64,000 nucleotides of DNA. Origin: Rhodosorus marinus CCMP1338 (Eukaryota; Plantae; Rhodophyta). Position 1 is the stretch's first letter; each line of letters starts with the position of its first letter. Below, piece by piece: positions 20,742-64,000 of this stretch. Location: assembly GCA_029953675.1 (NCBI GenBank), contig JAMWBK010000011.1:310001-374000 (forward strand), given 5' to 3'. The position numbers were made by a program, and so were the translations under genes. The notes under the pieces were generated by a model, which was not told the origin of the DNA, searched no databases, and worked only from the letters and a program-made list of their open reading frames with translations.

Positions 20742-22448
20742 TCAAACAGGACACCACAACTTTCGAGTTCCTTTCTTAACTATTTCACAACTCCGACCTT
20801 TCGGGCATCCCGTGCTTCTGCAGGGGTCGACTTTCCTGCTGCAGTTCATTCCGGTGAAGCCCGTCTCGCACTTGTCGTAGAACAGCCCAGTCACGACCTT
20901 CTTGTTGCGTCCTTTTAGCATCCTAAACGACTGAACCCCACCCGGGTAGTCTACTGAAACAGAGTACGATGCTGCACCACACTTGCCAATTCCAAAGTGC
21001 ATACGGGTACCCGCACTAACACTGTGGGACTGACCATTGGAGCCCACGCGCTGCGCAGTCCTCCGGTCTCCGCACCTAACTGTCACCACAGCACCCATGG
21101 GATGTCTGTCCCAATTCGCAAACGCCTGTTGTGCTCCCGCCCGCGGTCGGCCTACGAGCACAGTTACATAATCATTGTCAAAGTACGGCGTCTGGTTCTC
21201 GTACAACCTCCACGTCGCGTTCCTCGGTCCGACGAGCATGTCCATTCTGCCATCCTCGTTGTAGTCCAAGGCGATTGCTGTGTTCCCGTCCTCGAAATTG
21301 AAGGGTGATTCAGTCCCATGTTTCCCGGCAACCTTAAACTTGCCGTTCTTCTGGTTCAGAAGTAGGAGATCGTTTTTCCTCGGCTCGTTGAACGCCGTTT
21401 GCACCACCACGTACAGGTCCATGTATCCGTCAAGGTTGAAGTCGCCCGCCGTAACGTGATAGTGACGTCCCTCCAGTCTTATCCCTGCTCGCTGACTAAT
21501 GTCCTTGTACTTGCCGTTCGTCTTCTTGAACAAGAGATCATTGGAGCCGACGGCTCCCCAGGCACGTCCTCGGGCAATGTACAGTTCGAGACGGCCGTCC
21601 CCGTCGATATCGACCTCACAAGCGCAGCGTGCATCCTTGTAACCTTCACGGGAGTTATTAGTTTCCCGAATTTCGGGCAGAATGCCGTCGGCAAGCCTGA
21701 ACTTAAAAGGCGCGGTCCTCACGTACAGCTTTACACCATTGAAACCCATGAACAGGACATCCATGTGCCCGTCATCATTGGCATCCAGCGGATATACCCA
21801 ATAGGGCTCCGCAGCCTCCAACCCAGTGTTCTCGCGGACACGGTACCTTCCTTTACCAAGATTCTCATATACAACATGTTTCTTGGCAGGTCCGTTCGGG
21901 ATCCGTTGATTGGCAAAAAGAACGTCCAGGTCTCCATCAAGATCCATGTCAATCATTGCCATAGATCGTGCCCTAAACGAGGCCTCATTAAACCCATAGT
22001 CACCGCGCTGTACCTTCCACTCCCTCCCCGGCTGCTGGGTGACGATCAACGGAATAGCTGGATTTTTACCATTACTGCCTCCCTGAGTCACTATAATGTC
22101 GAGCAGGCCATCGCCATTCAAATCATCCGCAGCAGTAGCGTGGTAGTCTCCTCTGACGAGGCTCCCAAGCCTTCCCTTTTCAAAGCCTTTCTTGCATCTT
22201 CCCCAGTAGAAATCGATGGGGCTCCCATGGTTCCCCAAAATGAGATCCACGCACCCGTCTCCATCCACATCATAAATCGAGCTGCCCCAGTACTTGTTCC
22301 CCTCCGGCCTCCACTCGTTCATCTCACTTCTCGGAATCAGCCCCTTCCGAACAGTCACGTCCTTGAACGTCGGCTTGCGGATCCCCTGACCAAGCGCAAA
22401 ATAGAAAAAGCTCACAAGGAGCACGATCCCAAGTCCCTTCATCATCAT
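20742..22448 (-). CDS. Secreted FG-GAP/VCBS repeat + ASPIC-UnbV (CRTAC1-like) protein with Cys-rich tail, paralog 1
   Basis: Signal peptide, NKYWG, repeated DxDxDGxxD loops, SNGQSHS...MHFGIG and the tail CETGFTGMNC...C..C..C..C. Single open frame of 568 aa. Confidence 0.9.
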   Translation of the reverse strand: MMMKGLGIVLLVSFFYFALGQGIRKPTFKDVTVRKGLIPRSEMNEWRPEGNKYWGSSIYDVDGDGCVDLILGNHGSPIDFYWGRCKKGFEKGRLGSLVRGDYHATAADDLNGDGLLDIIVTQGGSNGKNPAIPLIVTQQPGREWKVQRGDYGFNEASFRARSMAMIDMDLDGDLDVLFANQRIPNGPAKKHVVYENLGKGRYRVRENTGLEAAEPYWVYPLDANDDGHMDVLFMGFNGVKLYVRTAPFKFRLADGILPEIRETNNSREGYKDARCACEVDIDGDGRLELYIARGRAWGAVGSNDLLFKKTNGKYKDISQRAGIRLEGRHYHVTAGDFNLDGYMDLYVVVQTAFNEPRKNDLLLLNQKNGKFKVAGKHGTESPFNFEDGNTAIALDYNEDGRMDMLVGPRNATWRLYENQTPYFDNDYVTVLVGRPRAGAQQAFANWDRHPMGAVVTVRCGDRRTAQRVGSNGQSHSVSAGTRMHFGIGKCGAASYSVSVDYPGGVQSFRMLKGRNKKVVTGLFYDKCETGFTGMNCSRKVDPCRSTGCPKGRSCEIVKKGTRKLWCPV

Positions 22449-23119
22449 AGCTTCCTACAGAGAGACCTCACCTCCCAACAAACAAGATCACTACCTCCCC
22501 AACACCCCCTGCAGACCAAGAGCTTTCACAGTCTTCCGTTCATATAGTCAAAAACCTACCGCGTCCTACCTCAAGACAACCTTGACGTAAAACGCACAAT
22601 CAGATATCGTCACAAAACAATGAGGAAAACAGAAACAGTCGCCTCCGGACGACGTTTCCTTGTCACTCCAACCCGACCATCCAGGTCGCTGTAACATTGG
22701 CCTTTATCGTTTGGCCCGAGTGAGTCATGGGCAAAAAACTCCAACGTCACACATCATCGGTAGACGGAAGACCATGCTCACGTATAGGAGAGCTCCAAGA
22801 AAACACGATATTTTTAATGTTGGAAGAAATCTGCCAGGCCACACTTCAATCCTAACTGTGGTGTGGCCTTACAAATCCTTGCCATCAATCCCCTCCCCCT
22901 CCCCTTATCTCCAGGCTAAGCTGGCGACTGGCTCAGGATATAAGTTTTGTTGATAAAATTATGAGGTGGATATGAAAATTTGGTTGTGTTTTATAAGCCC
23001 GTTAAGGTATTGGAATGTTTTCTTGTTTGTTTCTGATAGTTTCGACTGCATAATGGAGGAGCTTGATTGGCTTTCGCCTCGCGTGGCGAAAATGCGACCG
23101 TTTGTAAGGAAAAATTGAA

Positions 23120-27945: not shown

Positions 27946-28753
27946 ATGAAGGCTGGTGCGTTTGGTGTATTTTTTCTGCTTGCGGGATGCCTTTATATGG
28001 TATCTGCCATGGAGGGAGAGACTACTCTGGCTGAGCGCAACAGACGTTTCGGGAGTGCAAGTGACTTCGTATTCAACTTGAAAGGAGTTTCAGCAGATTT
28101 TACTCGCGCGGGAGCCAGGATCCAGGGTGGAGATGTCTCCAAGTTTCCTGCGTTGGATAATCTTGGAGTATCCAATACGCTCTTCACTATTAAGCCTTGC
28201 GGAAGTAAGATTGTAGACGTTCATTTTCATTCTTTCTTCCTTGAGTTCCGAGCTGAACTGTTAGTGAAAATCTTCCTTACCGTAGTGAATCTTCCACATT
28301 ACCACCCGCGAGCAACTGAGTTGATATACGTTATCAAAGGGCAGGATCTCACCGTAGCATTCGCGGAAGGTAAGTTTTCCTGGACATGCATGTTTGCTGG
28401 CACGGAACTGACCACGCTTATTTTCGCAAACTATAGAGAACTCTGGACGGAGTGCGGTTGTCAACGTAGTGGGTGAGGGAGACAATGCCGTATTCCCTCA
28501 GGGACTTCTACACTACCAAATCAACCTCAACTGCGAGCACGAGGTGCAGTTCCTCTCATCCCTGAGCAGCCATGACCCTGGCGTTGTGACAGTTCCAGAC
28601 CGCATGTTCGGTTTCGACGACACGGCCCTGGCTGTCGTCTTCAACAACCCGAGAATGAAAAGGTTTAGGAGACAGCGCTTGACCAATCTTAGATCTCTAT
28701 CACATCAGTGCATCGCGGATTGTAGGCGAAAGGGATATTCCATCGCTGCTTAA
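27946..28753 (+). CDS. Secreted spherulin-1/germin-like cupin A, 3 exons (introns 28205-28285, 28370-28436)
   Basis: Signal peptide; spliced germin box 1 PCGMNLPHYHPRATE; box 2 VFPQGLLHYQIN; SHDPG. Confidence 0.92.
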
Positions 28754-29204: not shown

Positions 29205-30850
29205 TACTCTGTTTCTACCCACCCAACCAAGTCTTCCAACTCCTCTCAACGCTCACTCCTCAAGGCCCCACCTCTCCTACCTCAAGATATCAGCAAAAAA
29301 CGAACACATCTCCCTTAACATCTATGAAACTGGAATTATCGAACAAAAAAGCGGGTGTCTACAGATGTATCTAAAGATATGTACACAGCAAGCAATGTAA
29401 ATATCTAAACCGCGAGAGCGAGTTGGGGAAACGTAGAAACTAGTTTCGACGGGTTGAGGAAAGCTCTTTGAGATTGTGCACAGAAATTCCGTTCGTGCAT
29501 GGCAACTAGTTGGCAACTGTCAGTGCACTCAGCATCCGCGGCATCGACCGCTGGCTGTTCCCTGCAGCTTGAAGTCTCCGCGGACGTACTGGAAAAGTTT
29601 TTTTCTTTGAGCTGCGGTGATGCGGTAGGGAGCTGTAGAATCTGTATGGGGTGGGGTGTGATCTCGAGGAGACTCGACGTATTGGGGCGTTTTTCGTCTC
29701 TTAGTCTTGCCTTGCACGGAGGGTCGATTCGAGCTTTGTATCCCCAGGGTCCGAAATCTATGGCTGCCAGTTGCAGGGCGTGGTGATAGTGATTCCTCTG
29801 CCCCGGTGAAAAGGTGACAAGGGCATTCGCTCGAACAGCCGGTTTGCATTTTGGAACGAGGCACGTCGGTGTTTGCGAAGACTTCCGATCCCGGAGGCTC
29901 TAGCTCCGTTGAGCTTGCTCGAAAGGAAATCGGTAGTAGATCTTGCACCCGGTCCTTCCGGCTCGTCGAAAGTCACAACATGGCGCGGCTTTCGGCACAA
30001 GGTTTCCACCGAATAAGAAACAAATCGCTCTAAACATCATGCCTAGTGCACAAGGAGCGGTGTGATAAATCCTGCAATAAGGAATTAAATGGATCTTGGA
30101 CCAATCCCTCTCAGGGGATTTTGAGTCTCACACACGAATTCGCCTTGCAACTTTTCAACTCGAGCGTGGAGCATCAAGGAAGAACACGCTCACCCTAAAA
30201 CGTGCTACCCCATGGTTGCTCGAAGGTCCACTCAACAAAAAGCCAACAAGATGGTCGAGATGATGAAAGTAAAATTTTGAAACCGACGTAACTAACATCC
30301 GATTCACAATGGACACGCTTTCAACCCAACGAAAACAAACCAAAAACAAATCTTCAAACACGAAAGATATCAAAGCCTGATTCACTTCCAGGATTACATA
30401 CCTACCGTTACCACTAACACAACCCTCACACAGACCCAAAAGTTCATGCCGACCACTCAGACAGCCACTTCCCACGGTACCATGGCGATCTGTGGATACT
30501 CAAAAGCAGCATGCTCGCCGAGGCGTACCACCGCTGCCTGGGCTTGCAAGCCGTTGGACCCTACCTCCTAGTTATCGTTGCGCCTTTCGTAGCGCTTTTA
30601 GGGCTATGTTAGTAACCACCACATACCATAGCGGTCACCCCGCGCACCAATCTCCCCGACTCTCACAAACCCCCAAAACGAACAAAACAAATTGCCAGCA
30701 GCGAAAACAAACCAAAAAAGCCGACCCGCCCATTTCATCCTTTTTCAATTATAAAACCACCACATCGTGCCTAAGTCAACACATCTGCTTAATATCCAAA
30801 AGAGCAAAAATAAAATAATAATTTCCGACTTTATCGAGAGCTGTAAAATT
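29205..30850. repeat. Segmental duplication, copy 1 (partner about 32295-33920)
   Basis: Collinear shared anchors: GTCTTCCAACTCCTCTCAAC, GTTTCGACGGGTTGAGGA (29443/32540), TTTGAGTCTCAC (30120/33285) and CCTCACACAGACCCAAAAG (30424/33604). Offset is 3.09-3.18 kb. Confidence 0.88.
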
Positions 30851-32192
30851 TGGTTTGTTAGTATGTCAACCTAACCCCTACTTTTTACGACTAACTTGCA
30901 CGTAAATATTTCTATTATGTAATATAGAACACTAATTTTCCGTTTCAATACCCCCCTAATTTCAAACCATAAATCATGTTATCCTTTTCGTTAATAAAAA
31001 CCGCCACATCGCCATCTCTCAACAGAAAAAATAAATATATATATAAATAATTCCCAACACTTTCAGAACTGACTCTACTAAGAGAATGCTCTTACCCCTA
31101 TTTTAAATATCTACATCCTTCTGAATATTTCTTGTTTTCATTATTCAACACTATTTTTGCAAGGTAACGCATCCCCCTATAGATTACAATCGAAAATAAT
31201 ATAGTTTTCTATATAAAATATCAATGAAGGAATCTGAGTAAACGCAGCTTCATTCATTTTTTAATGCTAAATTGGATTTTGATTTAGTTGGAAACCAGAA
31301 AACGAAGAAGGGATCATAATTTATTTTCGTCGTACAATATTTAACGATACAACTGTCGATCGCAGCTGTTTTGAAAGCTTTTGGAACCCAGACCAAAAAA
31401 AAGATTAAGATTATTTTCGTTATACAATATATAGACTAGGCAAAGTCTAGGAATGGAGGCAACTCTGAAAGTAGCTCCCTCAGCAGCATCTAAGGTTTGG
31501 TTGGGGAGTTCATTTCCCTACGCTCTGTCGAATATGAAAACTTCCCAGAACCGGAAGGTGGAATTCCCCGCCTACTCCCCAACCCCCCTCCACTCAAACC
31601 GAGTTCCCTACCCTGTGAATTGATTCCCAGGACCATCCAATGCGCTGCAAACATTTGGCCGGATGAGTTCTTGCGCAGAATCGATACTAGCACTGGAGGA
31701 TAATGCCAACTTCCACATGCTAGTCGAAGTCCACAAACGGGAACAGCTCCCAATGTAGCTCTCCTAGCCGTCATATCCACGAGGAGATCAAGAAACTTTT
31801 GGCTCGGGAGAAAACAAGAAGAATTCTCTTCAACTAGAATTAGTAAGCAAAAGAACCACATTGTTGGATTTTTTTGAAAGAGACACTGGGAGCGTCGCCT
31901 TGATTCGAACGTTGCTGCCTGGTCGCATGGCGGATTCGCCCTACATATTGGTTTCCAGGATTTTGGCTCCGTGGGCGAAACGTGTACGGCCACAATAGAG
32001 TAGCCATGTTATCAGAGGACGACCGTATCTCAAGAGCTTATATGGAAGCCCTAATCTCTCGGAAATCCTCTGGAGAGGGTTGGTGGGGCTGGATTTCTCC
32101 ACGGAGCTTCACCAGTCTCCTGGTTGAAGTTTCAGCAACCTCACTTTGTACCATTAACACTTGTTTCCTTTTTTACGCTATTTACACTTTTT

Positions 32193-32276
32193 ACGGTCTT
32201 CCCGCGGGGACTGTATCAGTGGCAGATCATCACCAGCTGCCACCCGATCCAATTTATCTCTGCGTTGAGCCATGCT
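32193..32276 (+). pseudogene. Fragment of germin-like cupin exon 3
   Basis: TVFPRGLYQWQIITSCHPIQFISALSHA aligns codon for codon with cupin C exon 3 (TVFPEGLPHWQINTSCYPVQFISALSHA). No intact upstream exons are visible. Confidence 0.85.
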
Positions 32277-32294
32277 AGAAAGTGTATGAGCACC

Positions 32295-33920
32295 TAATCT
32301 GGATTCTACCTGCCAACCAGGTCTTCCAACTCCTCTCAACTTTCACTCCGCGGCTGCCCCACTCAACTTGCTCTCCGGCTAGATATTTACTTGGCTTTTT
32401 CGGTTAGATATCTTTAGATACATATATACATGGGGATTGTTTTGTTCAATAATTTGAATTTTTCAGATATGTTGGGGAATATCTGAGATTTTTTGCCTGA
32501 GATCTTGGACTTGGAGGGGTTGGAGAAACGTAGAAATTAGTTTCGACGGGTTGAGGAAAAAGTTGGTGAGATCGTGCACAAAAATTCTGCTCGTGCAACC
32601 AGCTGGCCGCTGTCAGACAACGCAGTGTACGCCGCATCGACCGCTGGGTAATCCCTCCTCGAGACCACTGAAGACCTAGCGGAAGGAGGCTTTTTTTGAG
32701 CTGCGGTGATGCGGGTAGGGAGTTGTGGAATCCGATGAGGAGGGGTTTGTTATTCCGGTGAGGTGGTGTGTAGGCATTCTGAGGCTTGTATTGGGGTTCT
32801 TATTGGCTAGTTTCGTCCTTCGAGAGAGGAGGAACAATTTGGGATTCGTATCTCCTCGGCTTCGAACAGCATTGCTTCTAGTTGGTAGGCGTGGTGACAT
32901 TGCTTCCCCGGTCCCGGTGAAACACGGTGATAAGGGTATTCGCTGGAACAGGCGCACGCCGGTTCGCGTTTTGGGACGCGCCACGTGCTTTCTTGCAAGG
33001 AATCCCGATTCGGCAGGCTCTAGCTCCTTTGAACTTGTACTTATGGAATTAGCTATGATGATCGTACACAAATTCCTTCCTGCTTGTGGAACGTCAAATG
33101 ATGACCCGGCGTTTGGTGTATGGAATCCACCAATCAAGAAAAACTCCGTCAAAGCACTATGCACAAGGAGCTGTTTCATCGACAAGCAACCGCTGAACAC
33201 CACCATCGGTACCCAAAGAGCACGAACTGTCCCGCAATGAGGAAACAAATGAAACGTCCCCCGGCCAAATCGCTCACCGGGTAGTTTGAGTCTCACGCGC
33301 GAATTCACCTTCAACTTTTAAACTCGAGCGTGGAGCACAAAGACGTTCACCCTAAAAACGTGCTACCCCATCGTTGCTCAAGGACCCACTCAAGGAAGCA
33401 AAAAGTCAACAACATCGTCCAGATGACGAAAACAAAAAAAAAGAATTTTGCCGGCGACGCTGATCCAAGATCCGATTCACATCCGACACGCATCAAACCC
33501 CAAGCCGAAAAACCGAAACCAAAAAGGCACTCCTCGAACACGAAAGACATCAAACCTACTTTCCACTTTCGAGGTTTCGGTACCTACCGTTACTAACAAA
33601 AACCCTCACACAGACCCAAAAGCTCATGCCGGACTTAGCCGCCCGCCACAGTCCTCACTCACATCGCGACGAATCTCCCCGCAAACGCCCACAGACCAAA
33701 CGAAACCCCACCAAAAACAAATTTTAGCCAAACGCCCAAAACGTACTTTATCAATGCCAACCCTCCCGAAAAGGGTCAATCCACTCGCATTTTATCCTTT
33801 TTATTTTATAAAGAAACCTCGTATCTGCCTAATTCACTATATATCGATAAATATCTAATGAGCAAAAACAAATCAATAATCCACATTTTTTTGAGCGAAG
33901 TTGTAATGTACCCCCTCTAT
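32295..33920. repeat. Segmental duplication, copy 2 (partner about 29205-30850)
   Basis: Same collinear anchors as copy 1. Confidence 0.88.
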
Positions 33921-36571: not shown

Positions 36572-37390
36572 ATGAAGACTGGAACGTTCTCGTTTTGTCT
36601 AGTTTTGGCAGTCTCTGCCTTGGCGGTCTCTGCAGGGTTTGACCCGTCCAAGGAAGTGAGGGACATACGCGCTGAACTTTTCCCACATGCGAAGGACTTC
36701 AAATTTAATCTGGCAGACGCTCCGGCGTCGAACAACGGAGTGGGAGCGAAGATTCAGGGCGGTTCGCAAGGCAGGTTTCCCGCTTTGAACGGGCTTGGGG
36801 TGTCCTACACACTCTTCACAATTGACCCCTGTGGAAGTACGTAGCATATCCCGATCAGAGATATATGGGTCAAGACCACTTGCTGACGTATCTGACATTT
36901 GAAACTCTCTTAACGTGTATAGTGAACCTGCCTCACGTTCATCCGAGGGCGACGGAGCTCATCTATATAATCAAGGGATATGGTCTGACCGTTGGATTCA
37001 GCGAAGGTACGTTATCACGGAACCCATTCTTTGCCTTCACGAGTACACCTCTAACCATGGAACACATGAACTTTGCTCCTCTCAATAGAAAACGGCGGCC
37101 GTGTGCTCGTGAACCGCAAGCTGAAGAAGGGCTGGACTACGGTCTTCCCGGAGGGACTGCCTCACTGGCAGATCAACACCAGCTGCTACCCGGTCCAGTT
37201 TATCTCTGCGCTGAGCCATGCGAGTCCCGGAGTTGTCACTGTGCCAGACAGGTTTTTGGGCACCAGCATCCCGGACTACGTCCTGTCGGTCGTTTTCAAC
37301 GTACCCAAAGAAGATGTTCAGGATATCCGGGACAGGTTGTCATCTAGAGATCTCGAGGCCGAGTGCAAGAGGAGGTGTGGAATCCAGTGA
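36572..37390 (+). CDS. Secreted spherulin-1/germin-like cupin C, 3 exons (introns 36837-36922, 37007-37088)
   Basis: Signal peptide; spliced PCGMNLPHVHPRATE; VFPEGLPHWQIN. Intron positions match cupin A. Confidence 0.92.
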
Positions 37391-43396: not shown

Positions 43397-43992
43397 GCAG
43401 TGCTGCTAGCTACGCAACAGAACATGATTGGTGACGCAAAAGGTTGGCACACTCGAAATCTAGTTTTCAGCTGTAACATCTTACAGACTGAGGTTCATCT
43501 CACTTCTACCTAAAACGTTACTCCTCAGATTGGGTGGTTGCGTACATGTCTCTTGAACTGATGTAGTGCTGCTAGCTACTCAACAGGACATAATTGGCGG
43601 CGTGCAAAAGGTTTTCACACTCGAAACCTAGATTTTAGTTATAGTACCTTCTCAGGCTGTGGTTCATCTCGACTTTTAGCTGAAATGTTAAGATTCAGAT
43701 TGGCGCATTTGTGTACATGACCACGCGAAATCTAGTGCCTAGTTATAGTATCTTACAGACTGTGGTTCATCTTAGCTTCTAGCTAAAACGTTACTATTCA
43801 GATTGGGGGTGGTTATGGATATGTCTCTTGAACTGTTGTAGTGCTGGGTGCCAGCTACTCAACAGGACATGATTGGTGGCGCAAAAGGTTTTCACACTCG
43901 AAACCTAGTTTTTAATTATAGTATCTTACAGGCTGTGGTTCATCTCAACGTCTAGCTAAAACGTTAAGACTCAGATTGCATGGTCATGTACA
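43397..43992. repeat. Higher-order tandem repeat with structure [AB][AB][B][AB]
   Basis: GGTTCATCT occurs at 43492, 43661, 43764 and 43937 (periods 169, 103, 173). GCTAC.CAACAG occurs at 43409, 43575 and 43854 (periods 166, 279). Confidence 0.9.
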
Positions 43993-44006
43993 TTTGTCGT
44001 CGTTCC

Positions 44007-51021: not shown

Positions 51022-52356
51022 TCAACGGTCAAGTCCTTGTTCCTTTCTGTAGGTTTCCCAAGTTTCTTTGGACTCTGGTATCCAAGGCCACCGCCTGCCT
51101 GCCCTTTCACGCAAGCTTAGAGTCTCCGGGCACGCCTCGCAGATACCGAAACACCACTTCTCGTATCCCTCTGGCGGCCAGGTTTCACATATTGGGTTCA
51201 CCCCTGGACCTCCCTTGGGCGTGTACTTGTAGTCATCACAGGAACAGCCGTCCTCGCGGTTGAGGAGGCTCTCGTTCCAAGCCGGACACTCGGCAAAAGC
51301 GGCGCACAGCTCGGCAAAGTTCTCCACCACCTCGCAGATCTTATCGCTGGTACCCTTTTCACGAGCTGCGCTTGTATCAACGCGTTCCAGCCCAAGGAAA
51401 TCCAGAGACTGGTGATAGACATCGGTGGGATACGTGAGGTAGTCCTCATAGGGCTCCTCCAGAACGCAGCCGTCGGAGATCTTCTTGATCCCGTCGACCT
51501 TGTATTGGTGCGCCTTCCAGCTTCGGGTCATGATACAGTGGAGGTTGGCCATGTTGGTGATCTCGTAGGAGCATCCTACGCCAGTACTGCACCGATCTTC
51601 AAGAGCTTGCAGACCCTCTTCGCTGTTCGTGTTGATCCCGCCGATGGAAGTCTTGTCTCCGAGGTAGTGGTAAGCGTAGCGACCGATTGCCCTCTTCAGG
51701 TGATCCCTTCGGTAGTTGAAGATGATTTTGGTATCGAATTCATCGATGATCTTCTTGAACTCCTCTGGATACTTCAGAACCGGGAGGATGCCCAGCTTGA
51801 AGCCCGGCATTTTGCCCTTTTCCAAAACCATGGTGAAATATTCCCTGATCCACTCTATCCCTGCCGTGACGTTTCCAGACTTTGCCCTGAACTTGGGTTG
51901 GTTCATGGGTTCGAAAGTTCCGACCGCATCCGGGCCTCGGTCCCAGTATACTTGCGGGTGCTCAACAAGCTGACTGATCAGCGCTGTGCTTCCCGCGTGA
52001 GACGTCATGATGATGAAAAAGCTCCTCGCAGGTTTCTTATTCTCGTTGCATGCAGGAATTCTCCTGGAAAGGTGGTCGAACTCGTTCTTCGAACCCTTCC
52101 TGTTCAGCTGCTCATTCACTTGCTCAACTGCCTTCCGGTCTTCTTCAACATTTCCATAGTCCTCATAGATGTCCGACAATACTTCCTCACCCCTCGTCGG
52201 CTTCTTATGCTCGTCAACTCGCGTCGAACCCGGTATCCCAGGAAGCTGCCCCTGAATCACAAACAGAGCAACCATAAATACCCCAATCACAGCAAACGGC
52301 TTCCAGTTCAACGAACTCGAACCCCTCCTCGACGGCTTCCCACGTGCCACCGCCAT
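51022..52356 (-). CDS. Type II membrane (Golgi-like) PAPS-dependent sulfotransferase, Stf0/NodH-like, with Cys-rich C-terminus
   Basis: Short basic N-terminus, TM segment FAVIGVFMVALFVI and a stem region. FFIIMTSHAGSTAL is 5'-PSB-like; FEP and GFK follow; IFNYRRDHLKRAIG is 3'-PB-like. Intronless. Confidence 0.78.
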   Translation of the reverse strand: MAVARGKPSRRGSSSLNWKPFAVIGVFMVALFVIQGQLPGIPGSTRVDEHKKPTRGEEVLSDIYEDYGNVEEDRKAVEQVNEQLNRKGSKNEFDHLSRRIPACNENKKPARSFFIIMTSHAGSTALISQLVEHPQVYWDRGPDAVGTFEPMNQPKFRAKSGNVTAGIEWIREYFTMVLEKGKMPGFKLGILPVLKYPEEFKKIIDEFDTKIIFNYRRDHLKRAIGRYAYHYLGDKTSIGGINTNSEEGLQALEDRCSTGVGCSYEITNMANLHCIMTRSWKAHQYKVDGIKKISDGCVLEEPYEDYLTYPTDVYHQSLDFLGLERVDTSAAREKGTSDKICEVVENFAELCAAFAECPAWNESLLNREDGCSCDDYKYTPKGGPGVNPICETWPPEGYEKWCFGICEACPETLSLRERAGRRWPWIPESKETWETYRKEQGLDR

Positions 52357-53654: not shown

Positions 53655-55331
53655 TTAGATCGGGCAGTAGTAGTTTCTGTTCAATAGAGTCTCGCATCTC
53701 ATCCCCTGTGGACATTTTCCGTCTCTGCACTGTGGGATTCTCCTTGTACATTGCTTGCCGATGAATCCCCTCGGGCAGGGCCAGTACTGACCCACCTCGA
53801 TCACGCGGTCAACGCCGAAGAAGTTGCCCTTGGATACGGTGACTCCACCGACGTATTTGACGGAGATTCGAAGGATCCGATTGCACGTGCCGAGGCCAAA
53901 GTGGAGGGTATCCATGTAGCTCTGTGAGTGGGAAGATCCATGTCCGTCAACACGCTTAACGAAGACGCGATCCTTGCAGAAAACCTTGACCAGTGCTCCG
54001 AGGGGTGTCTTCTTTAGCCACGGTCGGAAGTGACCAGCCAGCGGCGTTCCGACCCTGATAATGACCCAATGGTTCCCGTTCTGCGGGGTTTGATTCTTGT
54101 ACAGACGCCATGTAGCGTTGAGATTACCCGTGAGGATGTCCAGACGGCCGTCCATGTCGTAGTCAAACACACCAGAGCTGTCGCCGTCCTCTCTCCTGCT
54201 CGGTGGCTCTGTCCCATGCCTGGGAGCGACTTTGAACGTGCCGTCGCCTCTGTTGAGCAGCATCAGATCGCGAAGACGAGGCGCGTTGAAGAACGTCACT
54301 CGCGTGATGTACAGATCTTCGTAGCCGTCGTTGTTGAAATCCCCGTGTGAAACGTGAAAGTGTCGGCCGGAAAGCTTGGCTATGCCGGCCTTCTCCGCGA
54401 TGTTCACAAACACACCCTTGCGCCTCTCTAGCAGGACGTCGGGGAAGGGCTTATGCCTGGCGCCTCGAGCAAAGTACAGGTCCATGTCACCGTCGCCGTC
54501 CATGTCGAACTCGGCAATACACCGAACGTTGCTCATCGTTTTCCAGCCGGGGATCATGCCCACGTTCCTCCGAAACTTGAACGCCCCGGTTCCGAGCCAC
54601 AGTTCAACTCTATCAAAGGCCATCAGTATAATATCCATCCATCCATCGCCATTGACGTCTAGAAGCTTAAACCAGAGCGCATTGACGCGCTCAATACCAA
54701 CATTGGGTGTGAAGGCGAACTTTCCGTTCCTGAGGTTTCTGTACATCAGGTGTGCGGAAGTTGCGGAGATGTTCCGCTGGTTTACGTAGAGCAGATCCAG
54801 GTAACCATCCCCGTTCATATCCAGAGCAGATATGGAACGCCCTCGCATCCCTTTCGTAGCTATACGAAACTTTTGCCCCTCGTCCCGGGTCCATGTTCTG
54901 TCCTTGCTGACATCGAAAACCACGGGCTTGGCGGGCTCCTTGCCGGACTTGCCCCCTCTCGTGAAAATCACGTCCATAACATTGTCATTGTCCATATCCA
55001 GCGCACAAGTGCTGTGAATATCTCTCAAAGCCAGCCTCGGATTCATGTACTGAAACCGCGCCTGCCCTTGCGACCAGTACCACTCCGCATTGTTCCCGTG
55101 ATTCGAAAGCAGAAGATCATACCTCCCATCTCGATCCACATCCACAATCGAACTTCCCCAGTACTTGTTCAGGGTTGGACGCCGCCTATCCGTCTGTCCC
55201 AGCCTCAACAGCCCAACCGGCCCGGACACGTCGCGATACGTTGGCACTACAACCGGCTGACCCAACCCCAGACCCACAACAAAAACAGCCACAAAAATAC
55301 ATCCAAGTCCAAGAGACCTCATCCTGTTCAT
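53655..55331 (-). CDS. Secreted FG-GAP + ASPIC-UnbV protein, paralog 5
   Basis: Signal peptide, LNKYWG, DxDxDG loops, GHGSSHSQSYMDTLHFGLG and the 6-Cys tail CPRGFIGKQC...; intronless. Confidence 0.9.
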   Translation of the reverse strand: MNRMRSLGLGCIFVAVFVVGLGLGQPVVVPTYRDVSGPVGLLRLGQTDRRRPTLNKYWGSSIVDVDRDGRYDLLLSNHGNNAEWYWSQGQARFQYMNPRLALRDIHSTCALDMDNDNVMDVIFTRGGKSGKEPAKPVVFDVSKDRTWTRDEGQKFRIATKGMRGRSISALDMNGDGYLDLLYVNQRNISATSAHLMYRNLRNGKFAFTPNVGIERVNALWFKLLDVNGDGWMDIILMAFDRVELWLGTGAFKFRRNVGMIPGWKTMSNVRCIAEFDMDGDGDMDLYFARGARHKPFPDVLLERRKGVFVNIAEKAGIAKLSGRHFHVSHGDFNNDGYEDLYITRVTFFNAPRLRDLMLLNRGDGTFKVAPRHGTEPPSRREDGDSSGVFDYDMDGRLDILTGNLNATWRLYKNQTPQNGNHWVIIRVGTPLAGHFRPWLKKTPLGALVKVFCKDRVFVKRVDGHGSSHSQSYMDTLHFGLGTCNRILRISVKYVGGVTVSKGNFFGVDRVIEVGQYWPCPRGFIGKQCTRRIPQCRDGKCPQGMRCETLLNRNYYCPI

Positions 55332-56342: not shown

Positions 56343-58016
56343 TCATCTTCCTACGATACAATAGTAAATCGTGTTCTTGTTGTTCTTAAAGAACATACGT
56401 TCGCAGCGCTGCCCTCCGCATCTCTTGAGGCTGCATTTGGGGTGCGTCAGTTTGCATTTGGGTCCGTTGGTGCCCTTGGGGCATTTACAAACTTTTCCAA
56501 TCGTGATAATCTTGTCCACGGACAGGCCGATTTCCCTTACGAGCCTGACGCCTCCCATGTAGTCCACGATGATCGATTTGATCTGCTTCTCCTGCCCGAG
56601 ACCAAAGTGCAGGGTATCCATGAACGCCTGTGAATGGGAACGACCCGGCGTGGTCACTCTCCGCATGAACTTCTTGTTCTTAGTGACAACCGTAACGACA
56701 GCACCCATTGGGCTTCTCTTCAGTTTCGGGTTGAGGTTGATAGCCGTTGGACGTCCCACTCGGACGATGACGTAGTGGCGATTACCCGGAGGAGTCTGAT
56801 TTCGGTATAGATTCCAGGTCGAGTTTCTCATTCCGCTGAGAATATCAACCTTTCCATCTAGGTCAAAGTCGAACGCGATCGAGTTGTTTCCATCCTCGTA
56901 CTGATTCTGCGATTCGGTTCCAGTGTTCTTCACCTGGACAAAGTCCATTCCCTTTCGGCTTAGGAGCATGATATCATTCTGGCGGCGTGTGTTGTAGTCC
57001 GTGTTCACGGTCAAGTAGAGGTCGATGTAGCCGTCATTGTTGAAGTCGCCATAGGTCACGTGCCCGTTATGGCCGAGCAAGCCCAGGTTTGTCTTCGAAG
57101 TGACGTCTACGTACTTGCCTCCGCGGTTCTCCAACAACGTGTTAGGGATATTGTACCTTCCGGGGAATCCTCGAGCGAGGAACAGATCGAAATCACCGTC
57201 GTTGTCGTAGTCAATCTCCGCAACGGAGGTCGTGCGCCAGACCCTGTTTGCCGGGAAGACGTTCTCCTGCCGGACAAACTTGAAGCTCCCCGTTCCGGCG
57301 TAGACTTCGAGCGTTCTCAGGTGGAAAACAAGGAAGTCGAGATTTCCATCGTTGTTGTAGTCGATCAGCGTGTGGGTCCATCCCCCAATAAACTCAAGTC
57401 CGGTGTTCTCACGAAGTCTGAACTTGCCGCGGCCCATGTTTTCATATACATAGTTGCCCCGCGGGTCATCCAACTTATCCTGGTTGAGGAACACGAGGTC
57501 CAGGTCGCCGTCGTGGTCGATATCCAAAAAGGTCGGACACCTGCCCCTCATGGTCTCCTTTCCAAACCCAAAGCTCGTGCCAGCGTCCTTCCTGAAGGTC
57601 TTATCCTCGTTCACCTTGAAGTAAATCGGCAACCCAGGCTTCCGCCCCCCACTTCCGCCAATCGCCACTACTACGTCCATCATGCCGTCGTTGTCCATGT
57701 CCGCTGCCGCCGTCCCATGTACATCATGAAGATACAACCTCGGATCCTTCGACTTAAACATATTATGCCCCTCCGAGTAGTACCACTCCACGTTGTTCCC
57801 GTGGTTGCTCAGGAACAAATCGTACCTCCCATCACAGTCGATATCCGCGATCGTCGCACCGTAATACTTCGACATCTCAGGACGCCTTCTATGATTCTGC
57901 GCAAGCGTCTGGATCCCACGAGCTGCGGATACATCGTTGAACGCCGGCTTCACTGCAGCCTCACACCCAACCCAAACCAATGAAAAAAAAATTATCAAAT
58001 CCCTAAAAACCCCCAT
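56343..58016 (-). CDS. Secreted FG-GAP + ASPIC-UnbV protein, paralog 6
   Basis: Signal peptide, SKYYG, ADIDCDGRYD, PGRSHSQAFMDTLHFGLG and a 7-Cys tail; intronless. Confidence 0.9.
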   Translation of the reverse strand: MGVFRDLIIFFSLVWVGCEAAVKPAFNDVSAARGIQTLAQNHRRRPEMSKYYGATIADIDCDGRYDLFLSNHGNNVEWYYSEGHNMFKSKDPRLYLHDVHGTAAADMDNDGMMDVVVAIGGSGGRKPGLPIYFKVNEDKTFRKDAGTSFGFGKETMRGRCPTFLDIDHDGDLDLVFLNQDKLDDPRGNYVYENMGRGKFRLRENTGLEFIGGWTHTLIDYNNDGNLDFLVFHLRTLEVYAGTGSFKFVRQENVFPANRVWRTTSVAEIDYDNDGDFDLFLARGFPGRYNIPNTLLENRGGKYVDVTSKTNLGLLGHNGHVTYGDFNNDGYIDLYLTVNTDYNTRRQNDIMLLSRKGMDFVQVKNTGTESQNQYEDGNNSIAFDFDLDGKVDILSGMRNSTWNLYRNQTPPGNRHYVIVRVGRPTAINLNPKLKRSPMGAVVTVVTKNKKFMRRVTTPGRSHSQAFMDTLHFGLGQEKQIKSIIVDYMGGVRLVREIGLSVDKIITIGKVCKCPKGTNGPKCKLTHPKCSLKRCGGQRCERMFFKNNKNTIYYCIVGR

Positions 58017-58119: not shown

Positions 58120-59858
58120 CCCACCCATTCCAATACCGGCACCATCCTGCTCTCATCCGTGTCACATCTTACAACTCAAAACCTCCCGCAATCGCCACAG
58201 AACAAAAATATCAATTTTCCTTGCCAACATTCTCAAAAAACCCGAAAAAGAAGATAGTACAATATAGTATTTAACAGTACGATAATAGTACAAGAAAGAT
58301 GATTATTTTCAAAACTTTTGATGACAAAAAAAACACGGTCGGCTTCGATTGTGTTTTGGTAATCAAAGAAGCGTTTGGGTGGATTAGCGAATAGATATTG
58401 GGAGAACTGAGTTTTCGTCCTAATTAATTTTTAATTCATAAGTTACGTCCTATGGAATGGTGGAAATATTATAGATGTAATTCGGAAAGTTTTGATATAT
58501 TTTTGGTGAAATCAGATGGTTTAGAGGAATAATTTACGAGAATAAATGAATAATTTTGGACAGGTAGCTAATCAGTGTTTTGGGTTGGCGTGAGGTTGCT
58601 TATTTAATTTATTTATATGAATATTTATATATTGTAATTGGGAATTTTATTGTGGATGGGGTTTTTAATTGAATTATTCTTGGTTTTTGGCGAGCAGCTA
58701 GCTGGTGGTGGTTTCGTTTTTTCCATGATTGGGCAACTGCGGGAAGGGTGGGGGTAGCTTTTTGAGTTCCAGGTACAACTACGCCTTCATCACCAAGCTC
58801 AAGCCGACCAACAGGACTATCTCTCTCTCTGCGACAGGGTTTGAGCGTAGTAAACAGCGCTAAACTGCATAAACCTAGTGCAGTTTCGCTTTAGCGATTG
58901 TACAGTGGCAAGATGAGGACAGCGATATCTTCCGACTCTGTTTTGTTTTGATCTGGATCAGTGTGGTGTTGCATTTTTTTAAGTCCTCTAACGGATCCAC
59001 CACCAACAACCGCCAGCGAAGCGCGCTCTTCCCCCGCACCCACGAAAAAAAGGAGCTTTCAAAAGAAATCACTCCTGCCCAACAGCAAACCACCCTCCTC
59101 CCCAAACAGGCCAAACAGAACCAACCACAATTCTCAGCAAGCAAAAGAGCCAAGCTCTCTCCCAAACACCTCCAACATGGAACATCCAACATCAGAGTCC
59201 AAAAAAAGAAAAACCTCAAAATGCCCCAAAACCCGCCACACCAAAAGAGCCCCTACGCTCACCCCCCGCACTCCACCCCAACCCCAAATCCCCCAAGAGC
59301 TCCCCCAAAACCCCAAAAACCCCGAAAAATCCAATCCCAATCCCCCCACGCAAGAACCCCCCAAAAACCCCAAAAATCGGTTGTGCAAAAAATATAAAAA
59401 AAAATATCCAAACGGTGGGAGGCCACGACCCTTTCCCATCTTCTTCCCCAACATCGATCCACAAATCCATAACTGACTCTTAGCAAAACCTCCCGCAAAA
59501 GTAAAACTGACTGATCTAGAACATATATTGATTGCATGCTGGTTTTATTTTAGAATTTTCAGTTTCTTACATAATTTGTAAGCATCTTTTGTTTTTTAAC
59601 GAAGGCGTTTGAGTCAGAGAGCTAGCAGTGGTTCTCCCAATGGCGGCTAACACAAAACTGCTTGTAGAAAATATTGGTTTGTTCTTGGGAGGTATAATTA
59701 GAGACAGGGTGTCCTTGTTAGGGTTTTATAGTACATTGTTAGTATTGGTTTTGTACAAACATGGTATTTCAGGGGCCCGGGCGGGGGGGGGGTGGGATTA
59801 GGATAGGGGTGCGGAGGAGGCGATGGATGAGCAGCGGGGATTCTTGTTAGTGTTTCTT

Positions 59859-61538
59859 TTACTGTCCAGGTGGTACTTTGCAGTAGTATTTTTTGCCGGG
59901 GTTGTCTGTGAAGAATGCGGTCTCGCAGCGTGTGCCGGCGCAGCTCTTCATGCTGCACTCTGGTTTCTTTAGGGCGCAGTTGGGCCCGGTTTTGTTACCT
60001 GAGCATTTACACTGTCTTCCGATGAGGATCGTGGAGTCTACTGTTATCCCCCCTTCTCGGATAACCCTGACTCCGCCGTTATAGTCGATGGTGATCTTCT
60101 CTATCTTGTCCCTCTTGCCCAAGCCGAAGTGCAGCGTGTCCATAAAGGCCTGTGCGTGGGAACGTCCAGGGGTGGACACCCGCCTTATGAAGACTCTGGT
60201 GGACGTTAAAACTCGAACTACAGCATGCATTGGACTCCTCTTCAGGTTCTTGTTCAGCACCCGTGCGGACGGCCTTCCAACCTGGACGAGGAGATAGTGG
60301 CGCCCTCCGTATGGCGTCCTATTCTCGTACAAATTCCAAGTTCCATTCCTGGCGCCTGAGAGGATATCCACCCTCCCGTCATTATCATAGTCAAACGCGA
60401 TTGAATTGTTTCCGTCCTCGTACGGATTTTTGGACTCCGTTCCGGTCCTCTTTTCCTTGACAAACCGCTTCCCAGCCTGGTTGACCAGCATGATATCATT
60501 TTTTCGAGGTCTCTTCTTATCAACAGTTTCAGTTATGTACAGATCAATGAAACCGTCGTTGTTGAAATCGCCGTAAGTGACGTGCCGGCTGTGGCCAACG
60601 ATGTCAGAATTCGTCTTCTTCTCCACGGCCACGTACCTTCCACCGCGATTTTCCAAGAGGATGTTCGGAGCCTCGTACTTGCCGGGGAATCCCCTTGAGA
60701 GGTAGAGATCGAAATCACCATCGCCGTCGTAATCGAATTCGGCCATCGATGCTACTAGCCTCAGGTTAATGTCCGGCAGGATGTTCTTCTTCAGATTGAA
60801 CTTGAAGCGACCAGTTCCAAGGTAGACATCCGGGCCTGGAACGTCGAAGACAATCAGATCCAAGTTTCCGTCGTTATCTATGTCCAGCACGAGGTGCTTA
60901 AACCCAAAGATCTTCTCTAAACCAGTCTTGTTGCGCAGCCGAAATTGACCGTTCCCGAGGTTTTCGTAGACGTAATGGCTCCTGTTGCTGTCCAGCTTGG
61001 GAGCGCTAAGAAAGATCAGATCCAGATCACCATCATTGTCGATATCAATGTAAGTCGCGGTTCTGCCACGTGTCTTTCCCTGGTCAAGTCCCCACTTCTC
61101 ACCGCGGTCTGTCTTGTACGTCTGGTCCTTGCCAACGTGGAAGAATATGGGAAGCCCTGGTTTGGTCCCTCCACTGCCCCCAAGCGTGAAGATCACGTCC
61201 TTGACCCCATCGTTATCCAAATCCCCAGCAGCAGTCCCGTGGACATCATGATTTTTCAGCTTCGGATCCATAGACGTGAACTTCTTCGTCCCCTTGGACC
61301 AGTACCACTCGGCATTGTTCCCATGGTTGCTCAACACCAAATCGTACCTCCCATCACAATCCAAATCCGCTATAGTCGCTCCAAAATACTTGCTGTCCTC
61401 CGGACGCCGCCTGTGGTTCTCCTCAAGCGTCTGAATTCCCCTCAACTTGGACACATCCTTGAACACAGGCTTCACCGCCCCTTCACATCCAACCCACACC
61501 AATAGATAAATTAAAACAAACACAGAAACCCTCCCCAT
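59859..61538 (-). CDS. Secreted FG-GAP + ASPIC-UnbV protein, paralog 7
   Basis: MGRVSVFVLIYLLVWVGCEGA signal peptide, SKYFG, ADLDCDGRYD, PGRSHAQAFMDTLHFGLG and a 7-Cys tail; intronless. Confidence 0.9.
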   Translation of the reverse strand: MGRVSVFVLIYLLVWVGCEGAVKPVFKDVSKLRGIQTLEENHRRRPEDSKYFGATIADLDCDGRYDLVLSNHGNNAEWYWSKGTKKFTSMDPKLKNHDVHGTAAGDLDNDGVKDVIFTLGGSGGTKPGLPIFFHVGKDQTYKTDRGEKWGLDQGKTRGRTATYIDIDNDGDLDLIFLSAPKLDSNRSHYVYENLGNGQFRLRNKTGLEKIFGFKHLVLDIDNDGNLDLIVFDVPGPDVYLGTGRFKFNLKKNILPDINLRLVASMAEFDYDGDGDFDLYLSRGFPGKYEAPNILLENRGGRYVAVEKKTNSDIVGHSRHVTYGDFNNDGFIDLYITETVDKKRPRKNDIMLVNQAGKRFVKEKRTGTESKNPYEDGNNSIAFDYDNDGRVDILSGARNGTWNLYENRTPYGGRHYLLVQVGRPSARVLNKNLKRSPMHAVVRVLTSTRVFIRRVSTPGRSHAQAFMDTLHFGLGKRDKIEKITIDYNGGVRVIREGGITVDSTILIGRQCKCSGNKTGPNCALKKPECSMKSCAGTRCETAFFTDNPGKKYYCKVPPGQ

Positions 61539-61680: not shown

Positions 61681-62443
61681 CGAACGTCCCGGCTCGCTAT
61701 TTGTCTCTCAGAGTCCGCTAGTAACTATGATGGCTATATTTGTTTGGAAAACAAAATCGGAAACGTAACATTTGTCTTTTGTAAGGATGAATTGGCCGGA
61801 TGAAATGATGAGAACATGATTATTAAATTATTTTCATCGATTGGAAAATCCCAATCAAATGGTTGGTTGAAAGGTTGGACAGGCTGTAATAGACAGCCTG
61901 TCCGATGTTGAGAATTCTGTTCTTGGGTATGGTTTTCCTTTACGGGATTTGGTATGGTGCTTTACTTTACTATGGGATGGAGTTGGATTGGGTTTGCCTT
62001 TTCTGTTGAGCAAGGTTTGACCTTGTTGGTTTCTGTGTAGTAGATGGGAGGTCTTGTGGTGGTTTCCGTTTTTGAACATTGTCTAGGCCTTTGGCGGGTG
62101 TTGTGGCGGGGAGGAGATTATGACTTGGTTGGCGGGTTGGAACTTTTTCCTTGCTCGGGCGTGTTTTGGAATGGGATCAGTGCTTAAAGGTGGTCGCTGC
62201 GATCTCGGTTTGCCGCCGTAGTTTGCAGAGAATCATATTGTTTTTACTAGATTCAAGTACTCAAAGTTAGCTGCTTGAGTGCACAATTTTGCTGGACAAA
62301 GGTTGGGTTGCCTCCCGGCTCTTGAAAAGCCCAATATTTTCTGCTTCAAGCGTATCTTTCGTGCTCCTGGTTTCTTAAATACTGGTCCTACCCCTGTTAA
62401 AGCCGGACTAAAGCTCCCAATCATCCTGGCACCAAGCTCGCGG

Positions 62444-64000
62444 TCATGGCACCTTCCTCCCCACGACGCAGTAGTAGATTAATCGTCTGTTACCGTTTAA
62501 GAACCCTCGTTCACATCGCCTTCCGGCACATCTCTTCCAGCCGCAAACTGGTGCTGGTAGTTTGCAATTTGGGCCGTTCGTTCCTTTGGGACATTTGCAA
62601 ACCTTTCCAATCGTGATAATTTTGTCAACCTGTATGCCGATTTCTCTGATCACAGTGACGCCTCCCATGTACTCCACTATGATTCTCAAAACCTTAGTCT
62701 GAGTCCCGAGCCCAAAGTGGAGCGTCTCCATGCATGCCTGAGAGTGTGACCGTCCGGGGGTTGAAACTCGCTTCATAAAGATTCCCCCGGGAGTCACCAC
62801 TTTAACAACTGCGTACATGGGGCTCCTGTCCATTTTTGGGTTCATTGACGCGCAGGCAGGTCTGCCTACTCGGACGATGATGTAGTGCCGGTTACCCTTC
62901 GGAGTCGTATTTCTGTACAAGTTCCAGGTCGAGTTTCGATTGCCGGACAAAATATCCGGCTTTCCGTCGTTGTCAAAGTCGAACGCAATCGAATTGTTGC
63001 CATCCTCCCACGGATTCTTGGATTGTGTCCCCACATTCCTCGTCTTCGTAAAGAACTTACCGCCGTTGTTGAGCAGCATCAGATCCTGCATACGCCGTTT
63101 CTTGTAGTCGGTGGTAAAAGTCACGTACAGATCGTCCCATCCATCGTTGTTGAAATCAGCAAACGTCGCGTGTCGATTGTGCCCGAGTATGTTGACACCC
63201 GTAGAATTGCTGACGTCAACAAAGATTCCGTTGCGATTTTCCAGCAGGATGTTCGGCATGTTATACACCCCGGGGTAGCCCCTCGTCATGTACAGATCAA
63301 AATCTCCGTCGCGGTCGTAGTCAAACTCCACGATGGACGTCACCAGCCTCATGTTAATGTTCGGCAATATCTTGTTGTTTTTGATGAACTTGAAACCCCC
63401 AGTACCCAAGTAGACGTCGACTCGTTCGATCATGAAAACCAGGATATCGATGTTCCCGTCGTTGTTAATGTCAACAATAGTGTTCGTGAATCCTGGTCGC
63501 ATTTCTAGTCCTGTGTTTTCTCGCAGACGAAATTTTCCATTCCCAAGGTTCTGGTAGACGTAATTTTTCCTTCCGCCGTCCAGCTTCTGCTGGTTGATGA
63601 ACATTAAATCAAGCTTGCCATCGTGGTTCAAGTCCACAAAGGCAGCCGTTCTCCCGCGCATCAGCTCGTTGCCGAATCCGTACTTGAACCCAGCGTCCCT
63701 CTTCCACGTGTGATTCTTCTTGACACTGTAGTAGATTGGAACTCCAGGTTTTTGCCCCCCACTTCCGCCAATCGTGAATACCACGTCCATGATTCCGTCG
63801 TCGTCCAAATCCCCAGCAGCGGTCCCGTGCACGTCGTGCATATAAAGGCGAGGATCCATGCTCTCAAACATGTTGTGCCCTTTCGACCAGTACCACTCCG
63901 CATTGTTCCCATGGTTGCTCAGGATCAAATCGTACCTGCCATCACAGTCCAGGTCAGCAATCGTCGCCCCATCGTACTTGCTCCCCTCTGGCCTTCGCCT
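62444..64000 (-). CDS. Secreted FG-GAP + ASPIC-UnbV protein, paralog 8 (5' end lies beyond the window)
   Basis: The frame is open to the window edge (RRRPEGSKYDGATIADLDCDGRYDLILSNHG...). PGRSHSQACMETLHFGLG and a 7-Cys tail are present. Confidence 0.9.
   Translation of the reverse strand, partial: RRRPEGSKYDGATIADLDCDGRYDLILSNHGNNAEWYWSKGHNMFESMDPRLYMHDVHGTAAGDLDDDGIMDVVFTIGGSGGQKPGVPIYYSVKKNHTWKRDAGFKYGFGNELMRGRTAAFVDLNHDGKLDLMFINQQKLDGGRKNYVYQNLGNGKFRLRENTGLEMRPGFTNTIVDINNDGNIDILVFMIERVDVYLGTGGFKFIKNNKILPNINMRLVTSIVEFDYDRDGDFDLYMTRGYPGVYNMPNILLENRNGIFVDVSNSTGVNILGHNRHATFADFNNDGWDDLYVTFTTDYKKRRMQDLMLLNNGGKFFTKTRNVGTQSKNPWEDGNNSIAFDFDNDGKPDILSGNRNSTWNLYRNTTPKGNRHYIIVRVGRPACASMNPKMDRSPMYAVVKVVTPGGIFMKRVSTPGRSHSQACMETLHFGLGTQTKVLRIIVEYMGGVTVIREIGIQVDKIITIGKVCKCPKGTNGPNCKLPAPVCGWKRCAGRRCERGFLNGNRRLIYYCVVGRKVP

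Follow-up and report, generated by a model that had tools for sequence, protein, structure and literature searches.

Why do twelve consecutive genes of a unicellular red alga, drawn from only three families, all appear to encode proteins of the secretory pathway? The question is raised by a 64,000-bp stretch of DNA, hereafter the window, from Rhodosorus marinus, a unicellular red alga of the Stylonematophyceae (assembly GCA_029953675.1, contig JAMWBK010000011.1, bases 310001-374000; the open reading frame at window positions 53655-55331, for example, corresponds to contig bases 363655-365331). From 20.7 kb to the window end we found eight genes for FG-GAP propeller proteins, three cupin genes with one cupin relic, and one putative sulfotransferase gene. 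An earlier note on this DNA had proposed that these genes form a co-regulated module building a Ca2+/sulfated-glycan sheath, and had named as the alternative a fast-evolving region in which duplicates of secreted-protein genes accumulate. Overall, the reading that we consider probable is a real neighborhood of secretory and cell-surface genes from known families, laid out as adjacent arrays, whose co-location reflects mainly local duplication and a common destination.

The claim that every intact gene from 20.7 kb to the window end belongs to the secretory pathway was borne out: signal peptide-like N-termini or a signal anchor were found in all of them. All signal-peptide and transmembrane calls reported here were made from hydropathy alone. 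The grouping into three families likewise stood and could be refined, the FG-GAP paralogs being eight in number and of CRTAC1/ASPIC type. The gene list itself was sound after three corrections, namely a frameshift in the second propeller gene (p2; propeller genes are called p1 to p13 below), a start codon of p8 beyond the window end and a cupin relic at 32192-32278. The public annotation, which we read for window positions 10742-32448 and 34007-64000, contains no gene beyond the three families from 20.7 kb on. Open reading frames in the gaps, including one at 32676-33314 within the stretch outside this annotation (32449-34006), have no Pfam match. A codon-usage scan from 22.5 kb to the window end, with 32449-34006 included, recovered every known gene and showed nothing else that was clearly coding at 22.5-27.9, 28.8-36.5 and 41.8-44 kb; the single extra peak (59149-59454, minus strand) is weak and lies inside a low-complexity spacer. 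No tRNA or Rfam family was detected in the window. Twelve consecutive genes from three families are far from a random assortment, and this non-randomness stems from tandem duplication.

The evidence for duplication in place comes from an extended array, obtained by joining the window to neighboring stretches of the contig and running tblastn over 107 kb. The whole neighborhood covers about 76 kb of the nuclear genome (20.7 to about 97 kb in window numbering), of which the window contains the left part and about 33 kb lie beyond it, and holds 13 propeller genes, 2 sulfotransferase genes (ST1 and ST2), 3 cupin genes and 1 cupin relic. Past the window the order is p9 and p10 (plus strand), a flotillin gene, p11 and p12 (plus), p13 (minus), a gene of 173 amino acids (aa) unrelated to the array families, and ST2 (plus). 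Ordinary genes (CN_hydrolase, B-box, RBFA and DRMBL) lie to the right of ST2, and the cluster as a whole is flanked on both sides by ordinary eukaryotic genes of a 1,442,050-bp contig. The all-secretory description thus holds for the window and, with the flotillin gene, fails for the whole array.

Relationships among the 13 propeller paralogs follow their position on the map. In the neighbor-joining tree, p6, p7 and p8 on the minus strand form a group that is sister to p9-p12 on the plus strand, and the two groups face each other across a 6.2-kb spacer that marks the inversion point. Similarly, p3 and p4 are tandem partners with p13 as their sister, while p1, p2 and p5 have no close partner. 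Pairwise identity ranges from 34 to 71%, and self-blastn confined DNA similarity among the copies to coding sequence. Together, the position-grouped tree, the level of identity and the coding-only similarity indicate that the clustering arose by old, repeated tandem and inverted duplication in place. Other Rhodosorus material has yielded transcript-derived proteins with 80-95% identity to p7, p9, p10, p13 and ST1, so the paralogs predate that divergence and are expressed. The array is therefore old and was built in place, not in a recent burst of duplication. The alternative offered in the earlier note stood in part: an accumulation of duplicates fits the tree, but the duplicates are old. The GC content at third codon positions (GC3) is the same in cluster genes and flanking genes, which identifies the cluster genes as native. 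Recent horizontal acquisition was rejected on this ground and because homologs occur across red algae.

The propellers make up the core of the array. All eight window copies match the Pfam families FG-GAP_3, FG-GAP and UnbV_ASPIC, with FG-GAP_3 scoring 92-132 bits in full-length copies (cutoff 26.9) and UnbV_ASPIC (PF07593) scoring 24.4-38 bits (cutoff 23.4), several of them barely above it. Public annotation labels them 'ASPIC/UnbV domain-containing'. A profile of the family matched murine CRTAC1 (9etn) at E=7.9e-48 across both the propeller and the UnbV/ASPIC domain. An AlphaFold2 model of p5 (558 aa; predicted local distance difference test score, pLDDT, 91.7; predicted TM-score, pTM, 0.92) shows seven blades followed by a beta-sandwich, and Foldseek placed 9etn_A first, with a match along the full length (E=2.7e-25, TMq 0.71, TMt 0.72), with integrin alpha-V next at 0.42. 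Fungal FG-GAP lectins and a beta-propeller sugar dehydratase (4a7k) were also among the structural neighbors of the model. The proteins are thus specifically of CRTAC1/ASPIC type, more than generic FG-GAP proteins. Weak, sub-threshold Pfam matches to the toxin-complex TcB region were dismissed as reflecting the common FG-GAP/VCBS repeat type.

Each propeller carries 4-7 calcium motifs of the form Dx[DN]x[DN]G at a spacing of about 55 aa, or about one per blade. The N-termini of all 13 reach 12-residue hydropathy maxima of 2.5-3.7, and no transmembrane segment follows. Eight of the 13 are basic, with an isoelectric point (pI) of 9.0-9.6, and the other five acidic. The C-terminal 45-80 residues are Cys-rich in 12/13 copies (4-10 Cys), many with a C..G..G..C motif. 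No EGF family match was obtained in the nine tails tested, even at E up to 10, and an EGF assignment was rejected on this basis. The exception is p11, which has no Cys in its last 80 residues and a Thr/Pro-rich tail. This tail consists of about 100 residues of TEGPTD-like repeats, is unique among the paralogs and is mucin-like, probably bearing O-glycans.

The likeness to vertebrate CRTAC1 lies in predicted secretion and in the order of an N-terminal calcium-binding FG-GAP/VCBS propeller and a UnbV/ASPIC beta-sandwich, but identity in the structural alignment with the p5 model is only about 17%. Vertebrates have one or two CRTAC1 genes, whereas Rhodosorus marinus has 13 in one array. The C-terminal ends differ too: CRTAC1-A has an EGF-like calcium-binding domain (PMC8536980), missing from some fish forms, whereas the algal tail is Cys-rich without a Pfam EGF match. 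According to Redruello et al. 2010 (as cited in PMC8536980), CRTAC1 homologs occur 'from cyanobacteria to man'. The bacterial relatives have the same three Pfam domains, with 26-28% identity across about 80% of the length. These CRTAC1/ASPIC-UnbV proteins, from marine Bacteroidota and Gammaproteobacteria, are in most cases longer, at about 610-885 aa among the upper matches listed, although some stay below 600 aa, and they do not have the algal Cys-rich tail pattern. One further candidate, P0070, proved bacterial and was set aside.

Embedded among the propellers is a small array of three germin-like cupins. Their Cupin_1 matches fell on separate exon pieces, and three-exon models rebuilt with GT-AG introns gave proteins of 219, 216 and 230 aa for cupA, cupB and cupC, the same lengths as in the NCBI gene calls. 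Barley germin/oxalate oxidase 1FI2 aligned with about 140 residues of cupA (E=1e-21), the H, H, E and H ligands and the two germin boxes, A (HxHPRATE) and B (PxGxxHxxxN), being in register. The His, His, Glu and His metal ligands are invariant in cupA, cupB, cupC and a cupin of Pyropia vietnamensis, and all three Rhodosorus proteins have a strongly hydrophobic 12-residue N-terminal stretch with no later transmembrane segment. Judged by these motifs, the label 'germin-like' given by the earlier note is correct. A signal peptide, a single Cupin_1 domain and manganese ligands are shared with plant germins and germin-like proteins (barley 1FI2) and with Physarum spherulins, whereas an EEN..GGR motif sets the Rhodosorus and Pyropia cupins apart from plant germins as a red-algal subtype. 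Germin-like genes form tandem arrays in plants as well, for example in the rice chromosome 8 cluster. Around the exon-3 relic at 32192-32278 there is no intact reading frame. The relic lies beside the second of two copies of a 1.1-kb non-coding segment, which share 68% identity (29422-30451 and 32519-33631). Together, the duplicated segment and the exon-3 fragment indicate that cupin genes were duplicated further in the 8-kb 'empty' gap between cupA and cupB and have since decayed there.

ST1 proved the hardest member to place. As a single query it matched nothing in Pfam, even at E up to 10, and no sequence in the PDB, and an AlphaFold2 model based on a five-sequence alignment came out unusable (pLDDT 36.7). 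An exhaustive profile search recovered 218 relatives, the nearest with a named source coming from Rhodosorus, Bangiopsis and Purpureofilum (all Stylonematophyceae) and the most distant, about 250 aa in length, scoring above the Pfam cutoff for Sulfotransfer_3. When a 74-sequence profile of the family was compared with the PDB, all 13 top matches were sulfotransferases: CurM sulfotransferase (1.2e-5) and NodH (9vki, 1.7e-5 over 211 profile positions, the whole domain), then tyrosylprotein sulfotransferases (about 1e-3), with 3rnl and StaL lower still. The NodH alignment includes the strand and 'SGS'-type loop that binds 3'-phosphoadenosine 5'-phosphosulfate (PAPS) (HAGST, residue 120) and the Arg of the 3'-phosphate site (R216), both nearly invariant in the family. 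In its topology, as in Golgi sulfotransferases, ST1 has a 19-residue basic tail and one hydrophobic segment (residues 20-36; 16-32 in ST2), followed by 14 Cys, of which 13 are invariant in the five-sequence alignment. The earlier call of a type II sulfotransferase is upheld by this topology and by the profile match, and the assignment of ST1 as a putative type II, lumen-facing enzyme is well supported at the level of profiles only. ST1 resembles the NodH/tyrosylprotein/CurM/Sulfotransfer_3 group in the profile alignment of the catalytic domain, but differs in its long Cys-rich C-terminal extension and in matching nothing in Pfam or PDB as a single sequence. Its acceptor may be either a glycan or a protein tyrosine; carbohydrate and tyrosine sulfotransferases both occur among the solved relatives. 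The transcript-derived counterpart of ST1 is 95% identical. A further homolog search with the 74-sequence alignment gave five proteins and no new red-algal locus. The only relative with retrievable context (P0208, on a 6.6-kb Logan contig) has the unrelated neighbors ATP11 and TMEM208, and a metagenome scan with the sulfotransferase alignment gave two AT-rich, bacteria-like loci encoding 244-aa relatives with no propeller or cupin there.

The picture that we favor is thus of an old tandem array of 13 CRTAC1/ASPIC genes, their products built of a signal peptide-like N-terminus, a seven-bladed FG-GAP/VCBS propeller, a UnbV/ASPIC sandwich and a Cys-rich tail, into which a short tandem run of three germin-like cupins with a relic and two paralogous type II sulfotransferases are embedded. 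The products would enter the endoplasmic reticulum and Golgi and reach the cell surface or mucilage. There the propellers may serve as calcium-stabilized scaffolds that probably bind glycans or other components of the matrix, and the cupins as germin-type manganese enzymes with oxidase or superoxide dismutase activity, while in the Golgi lumen the sulfotransferase would use PAPS to modify a glycan or protein.

Several observations weigh against explaining the co-location by local duplication and common destination. ST1 adjoins p4 and ST2 lies about 4.4 kb from p13, so the same propeller clade (p3, p4 and p13) meets a sulfotransferase at two sites, and the two pairs are about equally diverged (44-46% identity for the propellers, 48% for the sulfotransferases). 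In Pyropia vietnamensis, a Cupin_1 gene of the same subtype lies 6.4 kb from a propeller gene. That 43 kb should hold secretory genes only goes a little beyond what three independent tandem arrays require, and secretion, calcium binding and the enzyme activities are predictions from sequence. The pairings and the all-secretory content fit selected linkage, whereas the reading that we favor has to take them as inertia or coincidence. One ancestral propeller-sulfotransferase adjacency followed by segmental duplication would explain both pairs, and this shows long survival, not selection.

The same observations could speak for a functional extracellular-matrix island, in which co-regulation and a common target structure keep the propellers, cupins and sulfotransferase together. 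The sulfotransferase would make a sulfated polymer or sulfate proteins, the calcium-dependent propellers would bind the product, and the cupins would supply hydrogen peroxide (H2O2) for cross-linking. Such an island agrees with the secretory character of all 12 genes from 20.7 to 64 kb, with the repeated pairing of propeller and sulfotransferase (p4-ST1 and p13-ST2) and with the Pyropia cupin. The basic character of eight of 13 propellers would suit an anionic matrix, and fungal propeller lectins are among the structural neighbors. Linkage in other species says less in its favor. We compared five red-algal propeller genes at four loci of other species, with no genome of a close relative among them. 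The synteny proposed in the earlier note was found in Pyropia vietnamensis alone, and only for the cupin, which shares the germin ligands and the motifs NLPHxHPRA(T/S)E and EEN..GGR with its Rhodosorus counterparts. In Gracilariopsis chorda, Porphyra umbilicalis and Agarophyton chilense, annotation and tblastn alike placed no cupin and no sulfotransferase closer than 10 kb to the propellers; the Gracilariopsis locus has two adjacent propellers. Downstream of the Pyropia propeller (BAAFKR010000005.1), at positions 17359-19235 of the stretch compared, we observed a 207-aa gene, a MIR-domain gene and the germin-like cupin.

Within Rhodosorus itself, the flotillin gene and the unrelated 173-aa gene interrupt the extended array, the spacers are long (0.3-6 kb) with only low-complexity words in common, the two sulfotransferase sites can come from one segmental duplication, and the mixed relatives of the sulfotransferase do not fix its substrate. 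A k-mer count over 18 upstream regions, a search of low power, gave no shared upstream motif, only low-complexity words (A/T runs and G-rich words). On balance, a functional island seems unlikely to us. Of the sheath module postulated earlier, the family assignments and the secretory routing stood; the co-regulated module itself is a hypothesis. A stronger version holds that the propeller-germin and propeller-sulfotransferase linkages were selected and that a matrix cluster has been kept since before the split of Stylonematophyceae and Bangiales. We would give this version little credence. Were it true, calcium-dependent propellers of CRTAC1 type would be the targets or the partners of a dedicated Golgi sulfotransferase and of germins that produce H2O2. 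This matrix toolkit would be eukaryotic yet operon-like, and at its core would stand a homolog of a matrix protein from animal cartilage.

It is also conceivable, if quite improbable, that the propellers process or sense glycans and are not structural matrix components, their expansion being a diversification of substrate specificity, for example in remodeling the polysaccharide of the alga itself or in interaction with associated bacteria. Named relatives outside the red algae include CRTAC1-family proteins of Flammeovirga kamogawensis and Saccharophagus degradans, both degraders of marine algal polysaccharides. Similarly, a bacterial CRTAC1-family homolog (Logan contig SRR26459403_23174, 630-9188) directly follows GH43/GH2 glycosidase genes and precedes an AraC regulator and a galactokinase, and the sugar dehydratase 4a7k appears beside lectins among the structural neighbors. 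The gene order on this bacterial contig resembles a polysaccharide-utilization locus. By analogy with the bacterial relatives, the glycosidase neighbors and the lectin-like fold neighbors, glycan binding or processing by the algal propellers is a reasonable guess. However, we identified no catalytic motif in the propellers, CRTAC1, the closest solved structure, is not known to have enzymatic activity, and a bacterial neighborhood is not transferable to eukaryotic paralogs at 26-28% identity.

Bacterial contamination or an assembly duplication mimicking an array, which the p2 frameshift and the commonness of the family in bacteria might suggest, is close to refuted by the position of the genes within a 1.44-Mb contig between ordinary eukaryotic genes, the spliceosomal-type GT-AG introns of the cupins, a GC3 equal to that of the flanks, orthologs in independent transcriptomes and copies that differ by 29-66% at the protein level and so are not collapsed or duplicated reads.

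The cluster is not described in the literature searched, and the Rhodosorus marinus genome paper (PMC10250338) makes no mention of these families. While each of the three families is known individually, the 13-gene array, the germin and sulfotransferase genes embedded in it and the lineage-restricted sulfotransferase family appear undescribed in that literature. Red-algal mucilage and cell-wall proteins are little known and stylonematophycean algae hardly studied, and the locus offers a list of candidates at one address: 13 predicted secreted propellers of CRTAC1 type, three germin-like proteins and two putative Golgi sulfotransferases from a lineage-restricted family. In this unicellular alga, moreover, a protein architecture best known from animal cartilage and from bacteria has grown into a large tandem family. 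Should the linkage be functional, this would be a rare eukaryotic gene cluster for matrix building; should it not, an ordinary tandem expansion of secreted-protein genes.

Individual genes are listed in Table 1, and some differ from the public annotation. In p2, a one-base frameshift lies near 41262, the reading frame shifting at AACGGTTGGATGACG (window 41255-41270, minus strand); NCBI splits the gene into two, of 174 and 348 aa. Either a pseudogene or a one-base assembly error would account for it. The NCBI call for p6 is shorter (510 aa), starting 47 codons downstream and without the signal peptide; the 557-aa model looks right because its signal peptide aligns with those of p7 and p8. Expression of p7 is indicated by the MMETSP transcript product P0007, which is 92% identical.

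Table 1. Genes and relics of the array and its left border, in window positions unless contig bases are given.
Feature	Position	Strand	Length	Remarks
C2H2 zinc-finger gene	19452-19937			left border of the cluster
p1	20742-22448	-	568 aa	equals NCBI call; FG-GAP_3 (2.1e-32), FG-GAP, UnbV_ASPIC; seven calcium motifs; pI 9.0; signal peptide-like N-terminus; no close partner among paralogs
cupA	27946-28753	+	219 aa	exons 27946-28204, 28286-28369, 28437-28753; Cupin_1
cupin relic	32192-32278	+		exon 3 only; 87% DNA identity to cupB 37138-37224; tblastn 79% over 28 aa
cupB	36572-37390	+	216 aa	exons 36572-36836, 36923-37006, 37089-37390; Cupin_1; germin boxes kept
cupC	38886-39730	+	230 aa	exons 38886-39147, 39229-39312, 39384-39730; Cupin_1; acidic; six NxS/T sites
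p2	40110-41767	-		frameshifted propeller; two overlapping open reading frames in different frames; both halves FG-GAP_3, C-terminal half UnbV_ASPIC
p3	44007-45752	-	581 aa	Pfam matches; acidic, pI 4.8; variant C-terminal tail; 68% identical to p4
p4	47901-49619	-	572 aa	equals NCBI call; Pfam matches; tandem partner of p3 in the tree
ST1	51022-52356	-	444 aa	putative type II (Golgi-type) sulfotransferase
p5	53655-55331	-	558 aa	modeled with AlphaFold2
p6	56343-58016	-	557 aa	Pfam matches; N-terminus aligns with p7 and p8
p7	59859-61538	-	559 aa	Pfam matches
p8	62444-64117 (window part 62444-64000)	-	557 aa	equals NCBI call; Pfam matches; clade with p6 and p7; start codon past the window end, at 64117 in window numbering
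flotillin (Band_7/Flot)	contig bases 389909-391333			between p10 and p11; only clearly non-secretory gene in the array
p11	contig bases 393389-395443, beyond the window	+	684 aa	

The first 13 kb of the window, which the earlier note had called organellar and housekeeping, fits the housekeeping part of that description with an ATP-synthase alpha/beta-family gene, a DUF819 gene, an epimerase gene, two MgtC genes and a DUF179/AlgH gene. The two MgtC-family genes are divergent (8379-9254 on the minus strand and 10246-11070 on the plus strand), with about 1 kb between them. Direct repeats of about 85-170 bp (77-85% identity) lie at 43391-43993 between p2 and p3, a block that Tandem Repeats Finder left unreported at a score of 80. 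The gene-free stretch between the DUF179 and zinc-finger genes contains, at 14541-15932, diverged repeats of about 325-358 bp that are 71-72% identical, and a 121-bp unit is present in two copies at 90% identity at 18150-18396.

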